DNA of 64,000 nt from Blastocystis sp. Blastoise (lineage: Eukaryota > Protista > Bigyra: Opalinata). The number at the start of each line of letters is the position of its first letter. Position 1 is the first letter of the stretch. The translations under genes and the position numbers were made by a program. The notes below the pieces were generated by a model. The model saw only the letters and a program-made list of their open reading frames with translations. It did no database searches and was not told the DNA's origin. The stretch covers positions 1,240,001 to 1,304,000 of the forward strand of contig JBBPEB010000003.1 in the NCBI GenBank assembly GCA_039096225.1, written 5' to 3'. This document shows, one piece after another, positions 345-49,616 of the stretch.

Positions 345-3441
<3,097 letters not shown>

Positions 3442-4080: not shown

Positions 4081-5085
4081 TCAAGCAATTGGATAAGTTG
4101 CTTGTGTATTTATACCACAAATACCTAAACCACTTGATTGATAAGCTATTCGTATATAACCATTCTCACCCCATTCTTTACCCCAACAATTACGAATTAA
4201 AATATATTCTTTATCATTCTCTTTACCATAACCAACTGCTACAACGGCATGATTTATTGAAGTTCCACATTCTTCAGAATCTAATATACCACTTGTATAA
4301 TGATGAAAAAACTCTGTACCAGCAGCTAAAGATAAAGAAACAGGCTGTTTTGATATAGCAATTCGTAACGATTCACCATCACCTTCAGCAATATTTACAG
4401 AATCACTTATTGTTAATATCTTATCACAACTATCTGATTTACACTCATCTTCACGATTTACATAAGGATAAGATTCTTCACTACATAAACCTATTTTCTT
4501 TATATAATTAAAAGCCCAAGCAACTACACCACCAGAACAACCAAAATTACCATGATCACAATCAACTAATTGTTGTTCAGATACTTTTAATAATTTATTT
4601 GTTTTTTGAGCATAAACACTTTCACAAGAAGAAACAGCGGAAAAAGCCCAACATGAACCACAATATATTTGATCTTGTATTTCATTAACAATTCCTTTAT
4701 CACGCCAATCTATACTTTCTGGAATATCTTCTTTATTTAATAATATTCTTGTATTATTATTATTATTATTATTATGTTTATTATTATTATTATTCTTATG
4801 AACTAAAGAACAACCACATAAACGAGATGAACGAAATTCTTCATTTGATATATCACTAAAACGAGTTAAACCTAAAGTAAAACTATGATTCTTCTTATTC
4901 TCACTATCTATAAAATCAATATTCTTTGAAAATACGGATAAACGATAATTATATTCTTTATCATCATATTTCTTATTATATTCTATCACATAATTCTTAT
5001 AATGTAACGAATAATATAAAGAAGAATGAACTAAACCATATACACAAGGCAATAATAATAGTAAACGTATCAATATCTTATTCAT
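4081..5085 (-). CDS. Papain-family (C1A) cathepsin L-like cysteine protease, intronless
   Basis: Signal peptide, I29 propeptide with ERFNIN-type pattern (EYNYRLSVFSKNIDFI), mature start IPESIDWR, catalytic [19 protein letters not shown] and RNCWG. Confidence 0.95.
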   Translation of the reverse strand: MNKILIRLLLLLPCVYGLVHSSLYYSLHYKNYVIEYNKKYDDKEYNYRLSVFSKNIDFIDSENKKNHSFTLGLTRFSDISNEEFRSSRLCGCSLVHKNNNNNKHNNNNNNNTRILLNKEDIPESIDWRDKGIVNEIQDQIYCGSCWAFSAVSSCESVYAQKTNKLLKVSEQQLVDCDHGNFGCSGGVVAWAFNYIKKIGLCSEESYPYVNREDECKSDSCDKILTISDSVNIAEGDGESLRIAISKQPVSLSLAAGTEFFHHYTSGILDSEECGTSINHAVVAVGYGKENDKEYILIRNCWGKEWGENGYIRIAYQSSGLGICGINTQATYPIA

Positions 5086-7224: not shown

Positions 7225-7960
7225 GTAGGTATATGAATAGACATAGGAGTAGGAATAGGAAGAGGAGTAGAATTCATATTAATATTTGAATTTGAAATAG
7301 AGTTCGGTATATGAATAGAAATAGGAGTAGAAATAGGAAGAGGTGTAGAAGTAGAACTAGGTGTTTTTGGAGGTAAAGGAATGGCTATAGAGATTGAAGG
7401 AATAGATGGTTGTAGATCGTATAGTAATCGTTGTTGTTCTTTATATTGTTTATCTTTATCCTGTTCTTCTGGAAGAAGAGACACTTGTGGCTGTATATAT
7501 AATGAATTTATTGTAATAGATGAAGAACGAATATTGTAATCATTTTCTAAGATGTCTAAAACATTATTAAAATCACGATTAATACTATAATAAAAAGTCT
7601 CAAATTCTTTTCGAAATTGGAGTAATGACTCAATAATAGGAGTAAGATATTGAATAGTAGCAACAGAGACACAATTTAAAAGAATATCAAAAATTGTTTT
7701 ATTATCATTTGAAATAAGAAATAGATCGGGATGAAATTGTAATATATAGAAATAACAGTCAACAGCGCTACTCTTAATTGACATCATTATAGGTGTATAC
7801 CCCATTCTTGTTCTTATATTTATATCTATAGGATTCTTTAATAATAATTTTAATATAGATAAATTATCTTCTAATATAGCCAAATGAATAGGGCAATACC
7901 CTATTTTATCCCACAAACGGGTATATAATGGAGAATTCTGCTGATTCACTAAAATATCAA

Positions 7961-11278: not shown

Positions 11279-11420
11279 GGGATAATTTATGCTCAGCATA
11301 GTATGACGAAAAAATTCATGCTCAGCATAGTATGGCCAATAGGCTACCCGCCTATTGGCCTGGTCTACTATGCATACTCTAAAGAAAACACCTTCTACTA
11401 TGCTGAGTGTGAATTACGCC
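11279..11420. mobile_element. 142-bp MITE-like non-autonomous DNA transposon (Mutator-like by TSD length)
   Basis: Flanked by direct repeat TTTAGCAGAG (11269-11278 and 11421-11430). Imperfect 25-bp TIRs match at 20/25 (GGGATAATTTATGCTCAGCATAGTA vs revcomp GGCGTAATTCACACTCAGCATAGTA). Central perfect hairpin GGCCAATAGGC-taccc-GCCTATTGGCC. Confidence 0.8.
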
Positions 11421-11920
11421 TTTAGCAGAGATTCCATTGTTCATAATCTTTTTTATTTTGAAGACGTCGTTTATTGTAGTTCATAATGATTGATGTCGAA
11501 AGATACGATATCATCATAACGGAAGACTAGATGAACATATATATGAATTGATTCATGCCATACTAACAACTCTCATTATGTATGTATATAATTATCTAAT
11601 AATTCAAACATTAAAATTATCTAGACCTAACTAAAAATGCTATATACATGTGGATATATATAAGATATTTGTATATAATGCGTATATTTTGAATTATATC
11701 TTCATTTCTATTTCTCTCTTCAGTCTCTGTAATTAGCCTTTAGATGGATTCGTACATATAGCTAGACTTTGCCGTGTACCCTCTTGATGTGAATATGAGA
11801 TAATTCGTGTTGATAATCTTGATGCTGTATAATCTGTGAGCGCTCTATCTTCACCTGTGACTTCGGTGAGTTCTATTTGAATTGAAATACATAATAAAAG
11901 TATCCACTTGAGTGAATATC

Positions 11921-11957
11921 AAAAAAAAAAAAAAAATAGAAAAAGATAAAAAGAAAT
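11921..11957 (-). terminator. Original Pol III oligo-T terminator/trailer of the interrupted tRNA-Lys gene
   Basis: Minus strand directly after the tRNA 3' remnant reads ATTTCTTTTTATCTTTTTCTAT followed by a long T run. Confidence 0.7.
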
Positions 11958-11981
11958 CGCCTGATAGGGGGATCGAACCCC
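11958..11981 (-). repeat. Downstream copy of the 24-bp target duplication (3' end of tRNA-Lys: T-arm/B box, acceptor 3' strand, discriminator)
   Basis: cgcctgatagggggatcgaacccc on the + strand is identical to 20549-20572. Confidence 0.95.
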
Positions 11982-12812
11982 AAGTGTTAGCCAATTAAAG
12001 TAACCATTTGTACCAGAGAGAACGGTACACAAACAGAAAAAGAACATAAAAAAATTAAAATAAATTTAAAATATCATTTAATAACTTTTGTTCATTTTGT
12101 TTTGTTTAAGTATGTTTTACCACGGGGATATCACAACACATGTATTTCATATGCACCTTAAAATAACCAATAGGACTCTCTGAATGGGATTTGTGTACTG
12201 ATACCAGATCTAGTAACACAATTTTTACACCTCCCAAGCATTTCTGGGATATAGCTGATGTATAGGTACAATATACCTTTCATATCACGACTATATATAT
12301 GTAATTAATATAATTTAATTGATTTAATTAATATTAAAGGTTAATAAGTAGTAGAATAATTTTTTAAGTAATATTTTTAAGATAAGAGTTTAATAAATAG
12401 TAAGTAAGAGAAAAAGAGAAAATTCAATCTATAAATATATAGATATTCAATCAGAGCTGATTATAAATTCAATCAGTATAAATAAGTTTTCATTAAATAG
12501 AATTAGAATAAGATATAAAGAAAAGATTTCAATAAAAAGATATATATAAAAAGTAGTAAATTATAAAATCAAGTAAAAGTAATATATCCAATATAATATA
12601 TAGAGGATAGGGAGTAGATATATATAGTAAGTATAATATAAAGTAGAATTATTAATATAATATCCATTGTAATATGTAGAGGATAAGTAGTAGATAAATT
12701 TCATCAATATAGTATAAGTAGAAGTAGTATATTCAATATAGTATATGGAGGATGAATAGAAGTATTATAGAGGATAATTAGTAGTATATATTATTCCATA
12801 TAGTAATATATA

Positions 12813-15800
12813 TTATTCAATATTTCGTTGAGTTAGTTCAATATGAGCAGCAGAAGAATGTAGTCTAGAAATATTTTTTGTAATTAGTCTAGAATCAGAA
12901 AGAGATAGTCTCCAATACTTATAGGCCCATTCTAAGACTATATCATTAATTTTTGATATTAAAAAGTATAAGTATCTTCCTTTGAGTTTTGAGACTTGAG
13001 ATATATTATGAATAGTAGATTCAGGAATTGTCCCAGAGGCACCAAGTATAACAGTATAGTAGGAGATTTGTTTATTAGGGAAATCATGTTGTAATTTTTG
13101 TATAGCTTCATCATATGAATGATCTTTAGTATGTTTCATTTCTAAGATAGTATCACGAGTTCCATCTACTTGTTCATAAGTAACACCAATTTCTACCATT
13201 CTTATTTCTTTCTCACTTGTAATTATAATATCTGGACGACGATTAGCCCATTCCTCTTTATTCTTACCATCATATAGAATAGTATTCATTGATTTTTCTT
13301 GATTGACTTTATAAATAGTATAAGGAAGAGCTTTTGCCAAAGATCTAGTTAAACATTCTCGTATTTCATTATGTCTTTTGCTAATCAGATCGTGTCCATT
13401 TTCATTTCTAGAGATTCTAGCACAAGTAGTCATGATGTGTGTTTGACTATGTATTCTTGATTCATTTTTAGTTTTCAAACAATAAGGACATAAAGCGACA
13501 GTATCATGTAGAGTAGGTTTCTTTCCTTTCGGATCTTGTCTTCTATAAGCCATCTCACCAGTATATAGGGTTCTCATTCGAAGATTCAATAAGGCACAGT
13601 ATTTTGAAGGATTAATATGTTTTGTTTTGTATATCCATTTGTTACACGATATATTATTATTCAAATATTTAGTATATTGCAAATAGGAGTATTCTTTCAG
13701 CATAGAAGCATGTCTTATTTTCAAAGATTCATTTAATAATTTACACATCTTACGTTTCACATCTTTCGCTTCTATAAATTTCGATATACTATTATCAGTA
13801 CTTCTTATTCTTATTCCAGCTCCATTTTTCGGATTATTTTCATAGTAACATATGTCCATGTTTAAAGCAACTATAGCATCAATTGCTTTTCTTATATAAG
13901 GGAAGGGATGGTTCAGTGTAGTAAAGTCTATATCTAGAGGAATAATAGTATTATTTTCTTTCTTTGCTTTTAAGGGTTTGTTAATATTGTTGATAGATAG
14001 ATTAAAGAATACCAAATCTTTCTTTCTAGTTTCAGGGATTTCAGTAGGAATATGGCCTCTCATATAGTTTATTGGATCATTAATCACATATAGAGAATTT
14101 TGTAGAGTAGTATATCTAAGAGCATAATATAAAGTATTTCTAATATTTATATCATTTGAATTAGCCATTCTTACCAGTAGAGAAGCTTTACCAATATAGT
14201 ACCTATCTAACAACGAAGTAACACCAAGTCCACCATCTCGTATTGAAGTGCTATAAAAGTCTTTAGGCCAGACAGAAGAACATCCATTCCAATTCTTAAC
14301 ATTATTTCTTATTAGTACATCCAGTTCTTTTATTTTAAGTATATTAGTATCACCATTTCTAGCCAAGAATTCAATACAAGGAATAATATATTGACGAAGA
14401 GTTATTAATTTTTGATGAGGACTAATAGGAATAGTATTTAAAGAATTTATTTTTTCTTTGATTTCATCTAACGTATTCACCCAGAATTCTCTTCGTTTAG
14501 TAATGGATTCACCCATAGGACATCCTAAATATCTTTGGATTTCAGTATCTTTAAGTAGAGTAATCACTTCATTATTATAAGTAGGAGGAGGAGGAGTATA
14601 CGTAAGTTTTCTATTTCCATCATTGGAATATTTCATCGCTAAACACTTACATTTATTAACCGATAGTTTCATATGATATATATTAAGTATTTCTTTTACC
14701 TTTCCTAAAAGAACTTCCGTATCTTCTTTATTGTTAGCTAGCAGGACGATATCATCTGCATAAGCATAAGCATTACTTTCTGATATAACAATAGGATTAT
14801 TAGGAGTAGTGTTATCTTTAATATTCATCATCATGGCTTGATTATTGTTCAGGTAATTCAATAAAGGATTAAGTATAATATTGAATAGAAGAGGAGATAG
14901 GGGATCACCTTGTCTTATTCCACGCTTTAAGTATATAGGATCTGTATATGAATTTTTGGTTAATCTTATAACAGTATTAGCAGAAGAGTATAAGGATAGA
15001 ATAATATTTCTGAAGTCTATAGGGAAGTTCATATATTGAAGAATTTGATGCATTAATCTTTGAGGTACCGTATCATAGGCCTTCTCCAAGTCGAGGAAAG
15101 TAAAATAGGCAGCAGTTTTAGCTCTTCTAGATAGTTTAAAGTTAGCTATGTAGTTTTGTAGTATGAAATTAAGTTCTTCACAACCAGGTATTCCAGATAT
15201 AAATCCTTTTTGATATTTTGACATAAAGTTTTGTTTATTGTTTAGTTCATTCATGTAGGTAACCATTATAGAAGAAAGTATTTTTGATTCAGTATTTTGT
15301 AAAGCCAAAGGTCTCCAGTTTCCTAAGCTACTAGGATCCGATTTATTTTTGTCTAGTAGGCAAGTGATAGAGGAACTCCAAGATTTTAGAGTAATACCAT
15401 TCGAACGACATATTTCTAATATATAAGCCAATAGAGAACAAGCAGAAGAGGAGTATTTGTAAACTTCATAAGGGAGACCATTAGGACCAGGAGTACTGTT
15501 ATTTGGTAAAAATTTTAATGCATGTCTAATTCTTTCATAGGTTATCTTATTAAGGGCAGGAGGATTTAGTAATTGTTTAGTATTTGATTTTATAATATCT
15601 GGAAGTAATATATTATCTGAAGTTTCTTGTGAATCATATAGTTTCGTAAATTGTTCTTGTAAATCCTTAGAAGGTATTTCACAATATCTAGGAGTAGTTT
15701 TAGAGAATACTTTACTTCTTAAGAAAGCTTTAGTATTCTTATCAAATTCGGATTGTATTTTCTTAGCATCATTAATAGAAGTAATTCTTATTTTAGCTTC

Positions 15801-18800
15801 TTTAAGTTGGTTAATATTCCATAAGCATGATTCTATCTCATTCATTATAAGATTTAATATCTCTTTCCATTGTTCTAGAGTAAGTAGAGGAGTATTATTA
15901 TTTTCATTATCTTTCTGTAAGATATTTAATATATTTATTTTTAATTCTTCATCTTCATCAAAGAGTGTAATAGATTGTAGTTTATTTTTCCAATTAAGGA
16001 TAGACTCAGAAAGAGTAGAAGAGATAGTATAGGATTCAGTTTCAGGAATATTAGGTAATATAGTATGATTCAAATCGTATTTTAGAGTATCTAGATTACT
16101 TTTTAGATTATTATAGTATTTCTTTAAAGCTTCAATTTCATTATCCGTAGATTTTCTGAAAGGATTATTATCAAAGAAATCATCATTCGTTTGTTTGAAA
16201 TTATTATTCATATGTATAGTGTTAGTATTATTAGTAGGAGTAGTAGTAGTAGGAGGAGGGGAAGTAGTAGGAGGAGAAGCAGTAGAAGGAGAAGTAGTAT
16301 CAGTAGAGGGAGTAGTACCATTTATAGTAGTAGATCGATTAGTAGTAGTAGTAGTAGAAGGACTTAAATCCATATAGTTCTTATATTTTTTATTCTTTTT
16401 ATATTTGTTTTTATTACTATAATTGTTTATAGGATGATTATAATTATTCTTTCTTCTATTATATCTATGTTGATTATAATCATGATTATTTCCAGGAATA
16501 TTTTGAGTATCATATCGATTTTGAGTATTCCCATGATTATTCTGAGAAATATCATGAGTATTCATAGCATCCGTATTATTAGTAGTATTCTGAAGATTAT
16601 TAGGAGAAGAACCAGTATAGTTTTGATTTTGACCATAACCGCGATTATTTTGAGAAATATCATGCATATCCATATACTTCTTTCTATATTGATTATTCTT
16701 TCTAGTATATGTTTTCTTTAAGTTTCTATATTGGTTATTTGATCTATATGAATTGCTATTTCTATTTTTTCCAGCATAAGAATATTTATTTGAAGAATTC
16801 TTATCATTATAGTTATTCCTTTGAGAAGGAGAATAACTATTATTCTTTCTGTATATAGTATTATATTTCTTAATAGAACTGTTGTTATTGAGATTATTAT
16901 TACGCCAAGATCTATAAGTAGGAGTAGAATTATTATATATCCAATTATAGAGTTCATTTTGAATATAATCACATATATTATTGAAGGAATTAATCATTTC
17001 GTTATTCATCTGTATAGTATTCGATTCATCAGAGGAGTTAGGGAAAGGAGTAACAAGAGGTATGAGTTTATCTTCTATAAATTTGTTAAATCTAATGAAA
17101 CTTTTCCAATTTCCTAATTTATGTATAGCCATGGAAGAAAGTCGTCTTTTAGGAGTATTATCTACTTTGATAGTTTTTGAGAATTGTATAGTTTTCTGAA
17201 TATTAATAGGAGAGTAAGTAGAAAGGAGATCTTCAGTATTAGGAATTCGAGGAGCCTTTATATAATCATCATATTTTGATTTATTCTTAGTATTCTTATT
17301 TCTATTTCCTTTTTGTGTAGAATTCTTTTTATTCTTTTGAGTTGAATTATTTGTAGAAGTATTTTCTTGAGTATTAGAAGATTCAATATCCATCATAGTA
17401 TCATTATTAGTATTCATAGTAGTAGAAGCTATTTCTTCTTGTATTTCCATAGTATTCATAGGAGTATTTGTTTCAGAATTACTCATGTTTTGATCTATAT
17501 CTATATCAATATCTATAGTATTATTATTGTTTAAAATTTCATTCGTATTGATAGGAAGAGGAGTAGTAGTAGTTTCTATAGTAGTAGTAGTTTCTGTAGT
17601 AGTCTTCTTAGATCCATTTATGTCTTTTTGAGTAGAATTAAGTGGAGTAAAATTAAAATCTATATTCGAGAGACTTATATGATTTTCAAGAGGAATAGGA
17701 GAATTCATAGGAGAGGTAGTAGTTGAAGTGGATGTAGAAGAAATATTAATTATCGATTCATCAGAAGATACATCATAGTATTCATTTCGATTCTGTATTG
17801 TAGTTGTATTATTCATTTGAGTATTAGTTTCATCAAGATTAATAGTATTTCTCTTATTTTGTGTATTTTCTTCTTCATTAGTTATAGATGTAGTAATCTC
17901 CTTGTTTGTAGTAATATTCATAGTATTATTTACTAAATCCTTATGGATAGATTCCTTTTGCTGATTAATATTATTTGTATTAGAATCGATAGTATTCAAA
18001 GTAGAAGGAATACTATTAATATCTATATCTAATTCCATATCTATATTTTCTATAGAACTATTAGGAGACAATTGAGTATTATTTATAGAAGGAGAAGATA
18101 TAATAGTATTGTTTATTATATTGGTATTTATTTGATCTATATTCATAGAAGAAGATAAGTTTGTTGAATCTATATTAGAAGGAGATTCTATAGATATAGG
18201 AGATTCTATAGTAGAAGAAATATTGACTGTAATAGGAGATTCTATAGATATAGAAGATTCTATTATAGTATGATCATCTGGATTTATAGTAGTATTCATG
18301 ATAATAGGAGTATCAATATTATTTGTAGTATTTGTAGAAGAAGAAGAAATATGTATAGGAATAGAATTAGAATTAATTATAGAATTTGAGATAGAAGGAA
18401 TAGTAGGTTCAATAGTAGTTATAGAATCAGAAGGAACAGGAGATAAAAAGGTACCCATATTAGTATGTGTATTATCCTCAATTTCATTTTGTATATAGTT
18501 ATTTGTTGTATCACTTGGAGTTATTCTTTCTTGTATAGGGATTTCATTTTGTTTCGCTACTTCATTTATTGGAGCACTAGAATTTCTATGTTTATTTGAA
18601 TAAATATTTCTGAGAGTTCGTAGTAAGTAGAACAGTGTATTCACACTTGACTGAGGGAATAACATGGAGAATGCTTTTTGGCGGGTAATTCTTTTTTGAA
18701 TTCTAGGCCTATTTTTTCTTTTCTCGTAGATAAACATTAAAGTGAAGTGATTTATAAATTCCTTTAAGGATTCTATATTATTCCATTTCTTTCCATTTTT

Positions 18801-20519
18801 ATGTTTTTTTATTGTGTTATAACCAATTAGAAATTCAGGTTTTGCCGGGAAAAGCCAATTAAATTTAGTAGGAAAATCTTTAGGAGGAGAAGTAATAGTA
18901 TATATATTAGTAGGAAAAGAAAGAATAAATTCATTATTTTCAATAGTATTTAGTATAGTTTCATTTGTAGGAATCTCATTTTCATCTATTATATCATTAG
19001 GAGTAAGTATAGGTATTTCTATATTAGAATCAGAATTCGTATATATATCTTGATCCTCTTGTTCGGTATTATTTAAATTGATAGAAATAGGTTCATCTTC
19101 AGAGGATAAAAGGGAGGTAGTTTGTATAGAAGGATGAATAATTTCATTTCCAATAGGAGTATTATTTGTAATTGTAGCAGTATCTATTATAGTAGTATTT
19201 GAAGATGTAGATAAAGAAGGAGATAGTTCTAGTGTAGGATTTCTTGCCCAAGAAGGAGGATTCGTATCATTTGGGAATATTCTATTGTGTAGTAATTGAC
19301 TAAGTGTAGGAGTAGGAGGAGAATCAGAAGATTCAGGAGAATTTATAGCATCAGGAGAGTTTATAGAATCAGAAGAATCCATAGAAAAAGAAGAATCCAT
19401 AGGAGCAGAAGAATCAAGAGCATTAGAAGAAACCATAGAAGCAGAAGAATAAATAGAATTAGTAGAATCAACAAAAGCAGAAGAATCAATAGCATTAGAA
19501 GAATTCATTAAATTAGTAGATTCAGAAGTATTTAAAACAGTAGAATTAGATTGTGTAATGTTAACAGTAGGAATATTTTCATGAGTAGAAATAATAGATA
19601 AATTAGTAGATTCGTTAGTAGAATTGTTCAACAGGGATTCTTTTGTAGAGGACACATTTTCAGGAGTAGATAACGCATTAGAAGAAATAATAGTAGTAGA
19701 ATTTTCATTAAGAGTGTTTGTAGCCACCGAAATAACCATAGGTACATCATTTTGTTGATTTAGAGTCGTATTTTGTGTAGGAAGTCCAAGATTGGTAGTA
19801 GATTTTTGAGTAGATTTCACGTTTTGTTTAGGATCATCATAATCAATCCAAATGTTTACATTAGTAGACCAAGACTTAGCAAAGGCATCAGAAGACCAAC
19901 CAGTAGAAGACCAAGATTCATCTTTCTTTTCAGAAGTATTTTCAGTAGAAGGTTTCAAAGGTTCAGAATTCACTTGTAGAGAAGAGTCAAGAGGAGGGTT
20001 CAAAGGAGTATCCACTCTTTTTCGAATAGACTTGTATTGTGTAGATATCGGAGACATAATTCGTTTCTTAGCCGAGGAAGTAGTATCTACGTAGAGGGTA
20101 TCACTTTCAGAAAGTACCCAGTTAGAAGAATTGTTTGTAGTTGTAGTAGTTGAACCAGTAAGAGATAAGTCTATTAATTCTTTAGTATTTAAAGAATAAT
20201 CTTGTTTATTTTGAGGATCTATTTTAGTAGTAGTAGAATCACGGGAGAACTCGGAGTTTTGTGGGATTTCAAATCCGGAAAAAACCAATTTTGATCTTGG
20301 ATCACCATTTTCATCATAATTTTTTTGTTTTTCGTTTTTCTCATCTTCCACAGATTTAATTCGTTTCTCGTTTATCTGTAAACTGTTCTCATCGCTAGGG
20401 CTAGGAGCAGAAGAAGACGCCAGGTTCGTAGACCCAGATTTATCTCTGATCTTCAGATCAACTTGGAGTTTTGACTCCGGAACTTCACCGTTGTTACTAA
20501 AATGGATTGCTGATTGCAT
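12813..20519 (-). CDS. Retrotransposon polyprotein, ~2568 aa: long low-complexity N-terminus, reverse transcriptase, CCHC zinc knuckle, restriction-like endonuclease
   Basis: RT motifs in order: STPGPNGLPY, NWRPLAL, QKGF, FLDLEKAYDTV, GIRQGDPLSPLLFN, YADD (14751-14762), KCK, YLG, then GGLG. After these come CPYC...HIMTTC, KRHNEI, RPDIII...VEIGV...K and VILGASG. The likely start is Met49 of the track ORF (ATG at 20519), the first ATG inside the element. Confidence 0.93.
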   Translation of the reverse strand: MQSAIHFSNNGEVPESKLQVDLKIRDKSGSTNLASSSAPSPSDENSLQINEKRIKSVEDEKNEKQKNYDENGDPRSKLVFSGFEIPQNSEFSRDSTTTKIDPQNKQDYSLNTKELIDLSLTGSTTTTTNNSSNWVLSESDTLYVDTTSSAKKRIMSPISTQYKSIRKRVDTPLNPPLDSSLQVNSEPLKPSTENTSEKKDESWSSTGWSSDAFAKSWSTNVNIWIDYDDPKQNVKSTQKSTTNLGLPTQNTTLNQQNDVPMVISVATNTLNENSTTIISSNALSTPENVSSTKESLLNNSTNESTNLSIISTHENIPTVNITQSNSTVLNTSESTNLMNSSNAIDSSAFVDSTNSIYSSASMVSSNALDSSAPMDSSFSMDSSDSINSPDAINSPESSDSPPTPTLSQLLHNRIFPNDTNPPSWARNPTLELSPSLSTSSNTTIIDTATITNNTPIGNEIIHPSIQTTSLLSSEDEPISINLNNTEQEDQDIYTNSDSNIEIPILTPNDIIDENEIPTNETILNTIENNEFILSFPTNIYTITSPPKDFPTKFNWLFPAKPEFLIGYNTIKKHKNGKKWNNIESLKEFINHFTLMFIYEKRKNRPRIQKRITRQKAFSMLFPQSSVNTLFYLLRTLRNIYSNKHRNSSAPINEVAKQNEIPIQERITPSDTTNNYIQNEIEDNTHTNMGTFLSPVPSDSITTIEPTIPSISNSIINSNSIPIHISSSSTNTTNNIDTPIIMNTTINPDDHTIIESSISIESPITVNISSTIESPISIESPSNIDSTNLSSSMNIDQINTNIINNTIISSPSINNTQLSPNSSIENIDMELDIDINSIPSTLNTIDSNTNNINQQKESIHKDLVNNTMNITTNKEITTSITNEEENTQNKRNTINLDETNTQMNNTTTIQNRNEYYDVSSDESIINISSTSTSTTTSPMNSPIPLENHISLSNIDFNFTPLNSTQKDINGSKKTTTETTTTIETTTTPLPINTNEILNNNNTIDIDIDIDQNMSNSETNTPMNTMEIQEEIASTTMNTNNDTMMDIESSNTQENTSTNNSTQKNKKNSTQKGNRNKNTKNKSKYDDYIKAPRIPNTEDLLSTYSPINIQKTIQFSKTIKVDNTPKRRLSSMAIHKLGNWKSFIRFNKFIEDKLIPLVTPFPNSSDESNTIQMNNEMINSFNNICDYIQNELYNWIYNNSTPTYRSWRNNNLNNNSSIKKYNTIYRKNNSYSPSQRNNYNDKNSSNKYSYAGKNRNSNSYRSNNQYRNLKKTYTRKNNQYRKKYMDMHDISQNNRGYGQNQNYTGSSPNNLQNTTNNTDAMNTHDISQNNHGNTQNRYDTQNIPGNNHDYNQHRYNRRKNNYNHPINNYSNKNKYKKNKKYKNYMDLSPSTTTTTNRSTTINGTTPSTDTTSPSTASPPTTSPPPTTTTPTNNTNTIHMNNNFKQTNDDFFDNNPFRKSTDNEIEALKKYYNNLKSNLDTLKYDLNHTILPNIPETESYTISSTLSESILNWKNKLQSITLFDEDEELKINILNILQKDNENNNTPLLTLEQWKEILNLIMNEIESCLWNINQLKEAKIRITSINDAKKIQSEFDKNTKAFLRSKVFSKTTPRYCEIPSKDLQEQFTKLYDSQETSDNILLPDIIKSNTKQLLNPPALNKITYERIRHALKFLPNNSTPGPNGLPYEVYKYSSSACSLLAYILEICRSNGITLKSWSSSITCLLDKNKSDPSSLGNWRPLALQNTESKILSSIMVTYMNELNNKQNFMSKYQKGFISGIPGCEELNFILQNYIANFKLSRRAKTAAYFTFLDLEKAYDTVPQRLMHQILQYMNFPIDFRNIILSLYSSANTVIRLTKNSYTDPIYLKRGIRQGDPLSPLLFNIILNPLLNYLNNNQAMMMNIKDNTTPNNPIVISESNAYAYADDIVLLANNKEDTEVLLGKVKEILNIYHMKLSVNKCKCLAMKYSNDGNRKLTYTPPPPTYNNEVITLLKDTEIQRYLGCPMGESITKRREFWVNTLDEIKEKINSLNTIPISPHQKLITLRQYIIPCIEFLARNGDTNILKIKELDVLIRNNVKNWNGCSSVWPKDFYSTSIRDGGLGVTSLLDRYYIGKASLLVRMANSNDINIRNTLYYALRYTTLQNSLYVINDPINYMRGHIPTEIPETRKKDLVFFNLSINNINKPLKAKKENNTIIPLDIDFTTLNHPFPYIRKAIDAIVALNMDICYYENNPKNGAGIRIRSTDNSISKFIEAKDVKRKMCKLLNESLKIRHASMLKEYSYLQYTKYLNNNISCNKWIYKTKHINPSKYCALLNLRMRTLYTGEMAYRRQDPKGKKPTLHDTVALCPYCLKTKNESRIHSQTHIMTTCARISRNENGHDLISKRHNEIRECLTRSLAKALPYTIYKVNQEKSMNTILYDGKNKEEWANRRPDIIITSEKEIRMVEIGVTYEQVDGTRDTILEMKHTKDHSYDEAIQKLQHDFPNKQISYYTVILGASGTIPESTIHNISQVSKLKGRYLYFLISKINDIVLEWAYKYWRLSLSDSRLITKNISRLHSSAAHIELTQRNIE

Positions 20520-20548
20520 GAGGATATAAAAAAAATGTAAAAAAGAAA
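20520..20548 (-). terminator. Element 5' leader doubling as oligo-T Pol III terminator for the rebuilt tRNA
   Basis: TTTCTTTTTTACATTTTTTTTATATCCTC lies between the tRNA discriminator base and the ORF ATG and contains T6 and T8 runs. Confidence 0.7.
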
Positions 20549-20620
20549 CGCCTGATAGGGGGATCGAACCCCTGACCACTGGATTAAAAGTCAAGCGCTC
20601 TACCGCTGAGCTAACCAGGC
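20549..20620 (-). tRNA. tRNA-Lys(UUU)
   Basis: GCCTGGT TA GCTC AGCGGTA GAGC G CTTGA CTTTTAA TCCAG TGGTC AGGGG TTCGATC CCCCT ATCAGGC G folds into a 72-nt cloverleaf with anticodon TTT and intact A and B boxes. There is one T.C mismatch in the anticodon stem. Confidence 0.93.
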
Positions 20621-22177
20621 TCTCTGAATTTTGATTCTTATCAATGGTAGTATAGAATACCATGCTAGAGAATTGAATACATGCTAAAGTTGTATATATA
20701 TAATTAATACTCTTTCTGAAAAGCTGATTTATTTTTTATTTATATGTATATTTGTATTGAATATACTGTGTTAGCTTAGTCTACGTGTTTAATATGTTAA
20801 TAGATAAAAATTGTATACAGATGGGTATATTCTTCGATTACTCTAAAGATGGACTTAAGATTTTTTATAAGGAATATTTTAAGTAGTAAAAAAAACAAAT
20901 TGTCAATATATGCATAACAATGAAAACTTATTATTATTCAAAAACATGACTATAACTTTCTTTCATACTAAAAGGAGTAGTTATAATATAAAAATTATTG
21001 TTAGGGTGATATTATATATATATAATTAGTTATGAATATAGATATCATTACATATCGTAATAGTTTTCAAATGAATAAAAATATATATATATCATTGTAT
21101 TTTAATTAATTAAATAATGTTTGTAAAATATATATTTGTTGTGTATAAAGTTTAATTAAAATAATATGACCATAATAAAAAGGAGAATTATAAATAAAAA
21201 TATGAAAATAAATATAAATAAATATAATGCTATTTATATAGTGTATAAAAAATGATATAAATATATTAGTGATTATTCGATTATAATCCTTTTTAGTATA
21301 TTATAAATAAAAAAGAAGAAATTATTATTGTATATAATGATATAAACCCCAAAAAGGTATATATATAGATATATCTTTCTTGAATATTTAATTATATATA
21401 AGTAAAATCTTTCTTTAATTAGTATAAATAGTAATGTATATATAAATCTTAGCCTTTTTCCATCACATATTCTTGATTTTATTCATCGTTATTTTAATAT
21501 TTAGGAGTTATAAAAAGAATGATTTGATAAAAATTTCACTTTTTATTGTTAATATTATTAAAAAAAGTGACAATTACTATACAGTATTTGATAAAACAAC
21601 TAGTTGAAATAAAAAGAAAAAAATATATCCATATTAATCTTTCTATTTTATATGAGTTTAAAAAAACTCTCTATTATTAAAGATAGTTGAAATAATGTGA
21701 ATAAATATAATAAAAGAATTAAAAAGAATTTTAGCATAAAACTGAAAAGAATATCTTGTATATAAACTACAATAAAAATATGTTTTGTGTTGTATTATTT
21801 GATATATTATAATATAGTTTATATAAAGTAATATAGACAGAATTAAATAGTAATTCATACAAAGTTAATTAATATTTGATATTTACATTAAAATATACTA
21901 ACAATAGAAAACAAAAAAAAATTGAAATCGAATAACTTTATTATTAATAAAAGAATATATATATATAGAATCAAGAAATAATAATATTTATGACCAAAAT
22001 AAGTATGAGATTTAAAAATACTATGATATTGTATTAATATTCTTGAAATAGAAAGAAATATATAAATAAAATAAAATATATATAAGTATGGAAAAGAATA
22101 AGAAAATTGAAAATATAAATTAAATGATATATATAATAAAAATGAATATATATATAAATGTATATATATAAATATGT

Positions 22178-48638: not shown

Positions 48639-49616
48639 ATGAAATTTATATTATCTTTATTTTTAATTAGTGTAGCTCTCTCTTTAGCTCATAGTAATGC
48701 TTATTATCAAGCTCAATTTGGTGCTTATCTAGGTGCTCATCAAAAATCTTATGATGAAAGAGAATATAGATATCGTCAAAATGTTTTTGCTAAGAATTTA
48801 GATTATATTAATGAAGAAAATACCAAAGGACATTCTTATACTTTAGGTCTTACTCAATTTACTGATTTAACTAATGAAGAATTTAAAGCTAAAATCGCTA
48901 CTGGTCTTTTAAAAGATAATCTTAGAGCTAAGAAGGAACCTACTGTTTTACCTACTGATAATCTTCCTGAATCTGTTGATTGGAGAGAAAAGAATGCTGT
49001 TACTCCTATTAAGAATCAAGGTGAATGTGGTTCTTGTTGGGCTTTCTCTACTGTAGGTTCTATTGAAGGTGCTTATGCTGTTAAAACTGGTAAATTATAT
49101 AATCTTGCTGAACAACAACTTGTTGATTGTGATACTAGAGATCATGGTTGTTGGGGAGGTAAACAAACTTGGGCTTTTGGTGAACTTATGAATACTGATG
49201 GTATTTGTGAAACTTCTGAATATCCTTATAAAGCTGAAAGAGGTGAATGTCAAAAAGATAAAGTTACTCCTGTTGTTGCTATTCAAGATTATAATACTGT
49301 ACCTACTGAAAATGGACTTCAATTAAAGGCTGCTCTTGCTCGTGCTCCTGTTGCTGTTAGTATTTCTGCTGGTGATGAATTTATTCAACATTATACTGGT
49401 GGTGTTTTTGATAATGATGATTGCTTTAATATGCCTGATCATGCCGTCTTAGCTACTGGATATGGTATCTCTGAAGGTAAACCTTTTGTTTGGATTAAAA
49501 ACTCTTGGGGTGAAGATTGGGGTATGAAAGGTTATATGCAACTTGTTCTTGTTGAAGAAGGTGAAGGTGTTTGTGCTCTTAATGTTGATTGCTCTTATCC
49601 TATTGTTAAAGCTTAA
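48639..49616 (+). CDS. Papain-family (C1A) cathepsin L-like cysteine protease, intronless
   Basis: Signal peptide, ERFNIN-type propeptide, [29 protein letters not shown] and KNSWG. Confidence 0.96.

Follow-up and report, generated by a model that had tools for sequence, protein, structure and literature searches.

How can a retrotransposon of more than 8 kb lie inside a tRNA gene and leave that gene whole? The question is raised by a stretch of 64,000 nucleotides (hereafter the window) from the genome of Blastocystis sp. 'Blastoise', a tortoise isolate (assembly GCA_039096225.1, contig JBBPEB010000003.1, positions 1,240,001 to 1,304,000). A first-pass annotation noted that, on the minus strand of the window, a tRNA-Lys(UUU) gene with nothing missing stands ahead of an element of 8567 bp, behind which the tRNA's final 24 nt recur without a mismatch and lead into an oligo-T trailer. 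It proposed that the element is a young, probably sequence-specific retrotransposon with a restriction-like endonuclease (RLE), which leaves its host gene whole. We find that the element belongs to a site-specific family, with reverse transcriptase (RT) and RLE, that leaves a whole tRNA gene at its head. Judging from the sequences of its copies, this family of Blastocystis sp. 'Blastoise' is young, active and specific for tRNA-Lys(UUU) genes.

ARAGORN, run on the whole 64 kb, finds a single tRNA gene, tRNA-Lys(ttt), which is also matched by Rfam RF00005 (64 bits) and has its A and B boxes and its discriminator G intact. The two exact copies of the 24-nt sequence are 8591 bp apart, which sets the element interval at 8567 bp, and such a repeat at a tRNA boundary is far beyond chance. 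The tRNA reads TGGTCA/GGGG where the end of the element reads ...CACTT/GGGG, so that the 3' junction is unambiguous: it follows the first base of the T-stem (A). The 24 nt are the remainder of the T-arm and beyond, and they contain the B box. The repeat pair extends to 42 nt at 88%, with the same spacing of 8591 bp, because the trailers of the two copies resemble each other. Directly 3' of the upstream copy, the T3-C-T6 of the leader is the only terminator for RNA polymerase III (Pol III) that is available to the rebuilt tRNA. Apart from this 24/42-nt direct repeat, a repeat search of the window finds nothing at the ends of the element, neither long terminal repeats (LTR) nor terminal inverted repeats, and the 3' untranslated region (UTR) ends with neither a poly(A) nor a microsatellite tail. 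The gene, the element, the exact copy, the junction and the oligo-T trailers behind both copies are therefore as first described. The open reading frame (ORF) delimited mechanically at 12813-20663 only reads through the tRNA; the real one is uninterrupted and starts behind it (Table 1).

Table 1. Features of the window (C33), arrays of the same family elsewhere in the genome, and boundaries of distantly related elements (L, contigs from other assemblies). TSD, target-site duplication.
Feature	Position	Strand	Remarks
Complete tRNA-Lys(UUU), head of the insertion	20549..20620	-	ARAGORN, Rfam RF00005; six identical genomic copies
24-nt repeat, upstream copy	20549..20572	-	T-stem bases 2-5, T-loop, T-stem 3' strand, acceptor 3' strand, discriminator
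Leader, 29 nt	20520..20548	-	Opens with T3-C-T6
Single ORF, 2568 aa	12813..20519	-	First ATG past the tRNA, 30 nt behind the tRNA end
N-terminal conserved island, about aa 535-655	18555..18917	-	Identical between A units and the otherwise diverged 5' part of B
RT domain, YADD	14523..15341	-	Pfam RVT_1 E 3e-32; R2 proteins of the PDB E 2e-41
CCHC zinc knuckle and PD-(D/E)xK core of the RLE	13125..13490	-	Predicted from invariant columns and fold match
3' UTR, 831 nt	11982..12812	-	Ends with ...CACTT
24-nt repeat, downstream orphan copy	11958..11981	-	Would be original target DNA under the TSD model
T-rich trailer past the orphan copy	11921..11957	-	Locus-specific, related to the leader
Array C14			From the tRNA: tRNA, A, A, B-like, interrupted region, old 85% 3' end, last 24 nt
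Array C13			From the tRNA: tRNA, A, A, remnant
Array C10			From the tRNA: tRNA, A, A
Array C29			From the tRNA: tRNA, A, B
Array C23			A-like (96.8%), then B; head tRNA absent within the DNA stretch examined
C33 (window)			tRNA, A
L062 (GC 48%), tRNA-Arg(ACG)	575-647		Complete; ATG 10 nt later
L062, copy of the tRNA end	7246-7258		13-14 nt and T6, behind the 3' UTR
L058/L059			Contig starts and ends with one 30-37-nt tRNA 3' part and T5
L065			Circular or tandem contig; 13-nt tRNA end and T6, then ATG
L066			Ends with a near-identical 13-nt piece and T6
L061, L068			T-arm, acceptor end and T-run precede the ORF

One insertion says little about specificity, and the first-pass annotation proposed to search the genome with the ends of the element and to tabulate the junctions. 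The last kb of the element, used as a query, returns 11 further strong copies, each of which runs through the 24 nt. The first kb returns four more loci with a full tRNA-Lys and an element (C14, C13, C29 and C10), internal units that start exactly at the 24 nt, and an element-free tRNA-Lys on C1. The genome thus holds at least 12 units at six loci, and all 12 element 3' ends abut one and the same tRNA base, between the A and the G of the T-stem. When all 17 genomic occurrences of the 24 nt are tabulated, every element 3' end abuts one of them and every unit begins with the same leader or with a close B-type variant of it; the leader is identical in all A-type units, at five loci.

The exact 72-nt tRNA-Lys occurs six times in the genome, and a pattern combining the D-arm with the UUU anticodon loop finds the same six; this count comes from exact and pattern searches, since a genome search with RF00005 gave scores for no more than 63 of its 1505 candidates. 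The element is present at five of the six genes (those of the window, C14, C13, C29 and C10), and the one on C1 is empty. At the head of every filled array stands a full tRNA that has its A and B boxes and a T-run terminator, and this bears out the claim that the host gene is left whole. The flanks upstream of the five filled tRNAs differ from one locus to another, so that the five array heads are independent loci. BLAST of 1.5-kb flanks shows no similarity between loci, upstream or downstream, except downstream of C10 and C1; about 47 nt ahead of the tRNA are common to C14 and C33. The proposed sequence specificity holds in this sense: the same base is used at six loci, five of which have unrelated upstream flanks. 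The proposed youth holds as well, as eight copies do not differ at all over 862 aa and their DNA identity is 99.8-100%, three others being at 98-99% (aa). The frames of most copies are open; that of one C23 copy is shortened, and codon 768 of a B unit on C23 is a stop.

In the host ORFs of the window, AAA makes up 78% of the Lys codons. That five of the six genes for the tRNA reading this codon head retrotransposon arrays is an extreme situation, which is apparently tolerated. As a separate observation, the anticodon stem of this tRNA has a U.C mismatch (positions 29-41, window 20579-20595) that is common to all six genomic copies.

The protein agrees with what had been read from the letters, an uninterrupted ORF with RT, CCHC and PD-(D/E)xK motifs: Pfam, a match in the PDB, an alignment of 25 relatives and a fold model all point the same way. 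The best solved relatives of the RT are R2 proteins (9nl2, E 2e-41), ahead of L1 ORF2p (E 1e-21). When the C-terminal 262 aa are aligned with 25 database relatives, C38, C41, H55, C60, H77, P123, D124 and K159 are invariant; their order (C, C, H, C, then RH(N), PD and K) is the signature of a CCHC knuckle followed by a PD-(D/E)xK nuclease. A model of this domain made with AlphaFold (AF2) from the alignment of relatives (predicted local distance difference test, pLDDT, 87; predicted template-modelling score, pTM, 0.83) resembles the endonuclease region of R2 proteins (template-modelling score 0.60-0.66, E 9e-9 to 6e-6 for R2Tg, turtle R2 and R2Bm; 9dou, 9nl2 and 8gh6), and the next fold matches are viral PD-(D/E)xK cap-snatching nucleases. 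A single-sequence phmmer search of the PDB gives nothing significant for the RLE domain; the match came from the alignment-based model and the fold search. No domain of the apurinic/apyrimidinic endonuclease (APE) type, Exo_endo_phos, is matched in the Pfam scan. By sequence and by fold, the element is a non-LTR retrotransposon of the R2 superfamily, with a single ORF, an RT, a CCHC knuckle and a PD-(D/E)xK RLE. An LTR or DIRS element with a primer-binding site was considered and is ruled out by the sense orientation of the 24 nt, the lack of LTRs and the type of endonuclease, an RLE.

The N-terminal part of the protein is less telling. Its approximately 1570 aa are mostly of low complexity, Pfam finds nothing N-terminal of the RT, and there is no Cys before aa ~1190, which means that the N-terminus is without the zinc fingers of R2, NeSL and Utopia. 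A phmmer comparison of the N-terminal 1700 aa with a set of 390 database proteins matches only the stretch immediately before the RT. The conserved island of Table 1 is a candidate target-recognition domain, on account of its conservation between A and B units. Its single-sequence AF2 model is unusable (pLDDT 43), and a feature search of the ESM atlas is uninformative (scores of 0.78 or less).

The genome search also shows something beyond the one insertion first observed, namely tandem arrays. The units are arranged head to tail and neighbours share exactly one 24-nt piece, which gives a period of 8591 bp (the element plus 24 nt). The arrays are polar: the youngest units lie proximal to the tRNA and match the window copy at 99.8-100%, while the distal units on C14, C29 and C13 are 97.7%, 97.6% and 85% identical or degenerate. 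This polarity of age fits repeated insertion into a regenerated head tRNA, and unequal exchange alone would not give it.

The same layout is found in other organisms. In a HMMER scan of 1.8 billion representatives, nothing exceeds 28-33% aa identity to the element protein save this genome's own protein. We compared contigs from ten families of such distant relatives (28-33% aa), taken from other public assemblies. In six of the ten, whose GC content goes from 24% to 48%, the element boundary has a tRNA 3' piece and a T-run; L063 and L070 are in tandem with no recognisable tRNA piece, and the contigs of L060 and L067 stop short of the element flanks. The ORF of the relatives starts 10-240 nt behind the tRNA 3' end and T-run. 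Since distant relatives from unrelated assemblies have this layout in common, it looks like a lineage-wide strategy rather than the curiosity of one genome. In a phylogeny of 77 RT domains, the elements linked to tRNAs are spread over two or more lineages of the RLE group, and a named R2 lies between these; the window element is near the base of that group, at a position which this tree, with no named NeSL, R4 or CRE references included, leaves unresolved.

The genome of Blastocystis sp. 'Blastoise' contains a second RT-RLE family, at 45-47% aa identity to the first (C15:724039-747344, C4:2409216-2422170, C23:75552-78086 and other sites). Its copies on C15 and C4 have a tandem spacing of ~10.1 kb, and a pattern search for a B box followed by a T-run gives no match near the copies of this family.

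These data bear on the idea that true insertions were few, and that segmental duplication, unequal crossing-over or gene conversion of a block made of tRNA and element produced the rest, in which case the specificity would be overstated. The near identity of units across loci makes exchange between arrays plausible, and the ~47 nt that C14 and C33 share upstream as well as the duplicate downstream flanks of C10 and C1 go in the same direction. We nevertheless hold this idea to be very improbable: the flanks are otherwise unrelated over 1.5 kb, the diverged B variant and the old 85% unit use the same junction, the distant relatives show the same layout on other tRNAs, and crossing-over would not yield the polarity of age.

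How, then, may the element enter the gene and restore it? The best explanation, which we consider probable, is target-primed reverse transcription (TPRT) from a nick in the T-stem, followed by a staggered second cut, so that a 24-bp TSD regenerates the tRNA. The RLE would first open the tRNA gene on its antisense strand, with a nick between T-stem base pairs 1 and 2; we place the nick there because, under TPRT, the 3' junction of the element marks the first nick. The freed 3' OH would prime reverse transcription of the element RNA. The sense strand would be cut 24 bp downstream, at the discriminator or just past it (up to about 35 bp, an upper bound that comes from the first 11 nt that the leader and the native trailers have in common). 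Fill-in would then duplicate the tRNA 3' end, giving a complete tRNA upstream and an orphan 24-nt piece downstream, and the T3-C-T6 of the leader would become the Pol III terminator of the regenerated tRNA. As the head tRNA would offer a full target once more, later insertions would land there and displace the older units, which would build head-to-tail arrays with a period equal to the element plus 24 nt.

The trailers help to tell what belongs to the target and what to the element. On C10, the trailer at the distal end of the array matches that of the empty C1 gene exactly, beginning with the first base, which indicates that the distal 24 nt and trailer are native target DNA. The leader, on the contrary, travels with the element, as it is identical at five loci. 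It looks like a captured tRNA-Lys trailer, a reading suggested by the distal trailer of C14, which equals the first 21 nt of the leader.

The same trailers bear on an account in which the tRNA is never cut. The insertion would then have taken place in the oligo-T terminator, and the 3' tail of the element would be a captured piece comprising the last 24 nt of the tRNA and the trailer. It is in keeping with this account that the repeat continues for 18-21 nt past the tRNA into the trailer, that the leader's first 21 nt recur as the distal trailer of C14 and its first 19 nt as that of C29, and that 3' transduction from tandem donors would account for the 5'-only remnants, described below, in which the C13 and C14 arrays end distally. 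An RNA-borne tail should however be uniform in copies that are 99.8-100% identical, and the distal trailers vary by locus (C33, C10/C1, C13). The identity of the C10 trailer with the native one of C1 from the first base also disagrees with it, as does the downstream trailer of L062, which diverges from the leader right after the T-run. All this makes an uncut tRNA quite improbable.

The identity of the leader at five loci and in every internal unit means that at least the leader is carried by the RNA, and it may be that the RNA carries more. In an account that does without any TSD, the element RNA starts with nt 50-73 of the tRNA followed by the leader, and after TPRT at the T-stem nick the end of the cDNA pairs with the upstream half of the cut tRNA, which is thus rebuilt from sequence that the element brings along. 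Such an RNA might, for example, be transcribed from a start within the head tRNA, or come from a tandem donor; a comparison is offered by R2, where RNAs retaining 28S sequence from upstream give uniform 5' junctions. The constant place of the relatives' ORF, always 10-240 nt past a tRNA 3' end and T-run, would suit this account. We regard it as unlikely, since no known process would place an RNA 5' end at T-stem base 2, the cut expected of RNase Z lies behind the discriminator, and the long duplications published for RLE elements are read as the product of staggered cuts.

Several points weigh against TPRT with a 24-bp TSD as we propose it. The two 24-nt copies are identical everywhere, so that sequence alone cannot separate a TSD from an element-borne copy, and the fact that the A-type leader is identical at all loci and resembles native trailers means that a part of the 'target' travels with the RNA. 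The C10 array shares the downstream flank of C1 (100% identical over 4.6 kb, from the insertion point) but not its upstream flank, which is unrelated (C10:45001-55000 and C1:370001-380000); this discordance may come from a heterozygous filled/empty locus that was assembled wrongly across identical units, or from a true exchange between arrays. At their distal ends, C13 (636243 onward) and C14 (696877 onward) carry about 100-140 nt resembling the 5' end of the element: they match the leader and the first ~25 codons at roughly 80%, and unrelated DNA follows. Such 5'-only remnants are not predicted by simple TPRT with TSD, and abortive TPRT cannot leave 5'-only pieces. Deletion of old units, ancient capture of native flank by a long duplication, or 3' transduction are possible origins. 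Last, identical 8.6-kb units at five loci are hard to assemble.

The C13 and C14 remnants would come from an older member of the family; what they conserve best is a GGAGU-CAAA-ACUCC hairpin that lies within the first 25 codons and is likewise kept between A and B units.

The difficulty of assembly raises the question of an artefact, in which identical repeats would have been mis-joined beside tRNA genes. Tortoise-clade Blastocystis isolates have large genomes, rich in low-complexity sequence, with a diploid k-mer signal (PMC12129017); the genome paper cites the Flye long-read assembler and is silent on retrotransposons and tRNA genes (PMC12129017). The assembler and the diploid signal leave room for mis-joins, and the discordant flanks of C10 and C1 could be a chimeric join. 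The public run X1, which holds 93% of the sampled words of the element and whose contigs tile 15500-21000, speaks for the assembly. One of its contigs (20535-21000) goes from the leader through the whole tRNA into the unique upstream flank of the window, which supports the 5' junction. As the same junctions moreover occur at 17 places, and the same architecture is found in independent assemblies of other organisms, an artefact is hardly credible.

The summed depth of X1 is 70-511 on the element and 3.6 in the flank past 21016. X1 may be RNA, in which case the element is expressed; the run is seen as contigs, which show neither ends nor strand. The contig of 20535-21000 skips 20692-20803, that is 112 nt with GT..AG ends on the plus strand, which looks like a spliced transcript antisense to the tRNA, starting in or near the 5' end of the element. 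The same contig has a C>T change at 20565 (G57>A, in the T-loop) that matches no assembled copy.

In R2 the 5' end of the element RNA is set by an HDV-like ribozyme (named after hepatitis delta virus); an Rfam scan of 11700-21000 at E<=1 matches the tRNA alone, bearing in mind that divergent ribozymes can escape detection. It may be that the tRNA is itself a working part of the element, and that an RNase Z cut of the co-transcript defines the RNA 5' end in place of the ribozyme. This suggestion is a tentative one, which we see as somewhat unlikely; it stems from the observation that the clade, with tRNA-Lys here and tRNA-Arg and others in relatives, always places the start codon 10-240 nt behind the regenerated tRNA. 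If true, the element would in return give the tRNA its Pol III terminator, and nearly all genes for the tRNA reading the dominant Lys codon would depend on retrotransposon sequence. The 3' end of the element does not have a tRNA-like fold: the last 153 nt (z = -1.2) form only the T-arm hairpin and one small stem.

Comparison with known systems shows which part of this is new. RLE elements specific for tRNA genes have been described: NeSL-1_TV in Trichomonas (tRNA-Pro), LIN15_SM in a planarian (tRNA-Arg) and LIN25_SM (tRNA-Glu) (Kojima & Jurka 2015, PMC4640811). Like the present element, they combine an RLE, a single kind of tRNA gene as target and a precise 3' junction inside the tRNA. The present element differs in its target, tRNA-Lys(UUU), its stramenopile host and the lack of N-terminal zinc fingers. 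From our reading of S6 Fig of PMC4640811, the 3' junction of LIN15_SM in the anticodon stem and its 5' junction in the T-arm imply a duplication of roughly 40 bp, which would have arisen in the way proposed here. The upstream tRNA copy at the one 5' junction shown for LIN15_SM stops in the T-arm and is incomplete, whereas in the present element and its relatives the upstream copy always reaches the discriminator and gains a terminator.

R2 is the best match in sequence and in fold, and shares with the present element a single ORF, RT, CCHC and RLE, and a precise 3' junction without poly(A); the chemistry of TPRT is, by analogy, presumably shared too. Contrary to R2, the present element does not target 28S genes (all copies are in tRNA-Lys), no C2H2 zinc finger or Myb domain was found in its N-terminus, which is about 1700 aa long, and the Rfam scan, which divergent ribozymes can escape, matches no HDV-like ribozyme. 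The proposed stagger would be 24 bp instead of a few bp, and the target is regenerated instead of disrupted.

Long TSDs have precedents among RLE elements whose targets are multicopy RNA genes. R9 is reportedly inserted in rotifer 28S genes with a 126-bp TSD. Utopia and R9 have other targets than the present element, and the constant regeneration of a complete, terminated gene is not described for them. For reptile Utopia, which is inserted in U2 snRNA genes, TSDs of 20 bp are published, along with occasional tandem insertion and arrays of element and target (PMC4640811).

tRNA genes are also safe havens in compact genomes for the Dictyostelium elements TRE5/TRE3 and DGLT-A and for yeast Ty3. 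The latter elements integrate at a distance from any tRNA gene, via the Pol III machinery, with an APE endonuclease or an integrase and no sequence specificity, while the present one uses an RLE and a defined sequence inside one tRNA species. Dada DNA transposons, which have a DDE transposase and 6-7-bp TSDs, insert in tRNA or snRNA genes, tRNA-Lys included (Dada-tK) (PMC8869645). They are likewise sequence-specific for particular tRNA genes, except that they lie in the region of the A box or of the anticodon stem and split the copy that they hit.

The first-pass annotation knew of no described family with this target, a remark to be corrected on one point. A literature search found no described RLE family in tRNA-Lys and no report of target regeneration; tRNA-gene-specific RLE elements, long TSDs and occasional tandem insertion, on the other hand, are already known (PMC4640811). 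As far as that search found, what is new is the tRNA-Lys(UUU) target in a stramenopile and a duplication that always ends at the tRNA 3' end, so that the gene is regenerated and terminated by the element. The near saturation of an essential tRNA gene family, the polar arrays, the lack of zinc fingers and the recurrence of the layout in distant relatives also appear to be new within the same search. Site-specific R2-type elements underlie current tools for RNA-templated gene insertion. A lineage found in nature, which inserts 8-10 kb into a tRNA gene and in one step makes that gene whole again, suggests a different safe-harbour logic, and the element offers a target that is recognised without zinc fingers.

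Some observations concern the surroundings. Between the distal flank of the element and an ankyrin-repeat ORF, the window has, at 11283-11416, inverted repeats that resemble those of miniature inverted-repeat transposable elements, with arms of 20-21 nt that are 86-90% complementary, and the same interval holds a 27-nt direct repeat. Elsewhere in the genome, contigs C9 and C12 contain dense clusters of high-scoring tRNA genes in their first ~27 kb and ~19 kb, respectively, which are probably copies of the genome of the mitochondrion-related organelle. Two genes of the window (4081-5085 and 48639-49616) encode cysteine proteases of the papain family, of which the genome has at least eight paralogues with a mutual identity of about 46-49%.

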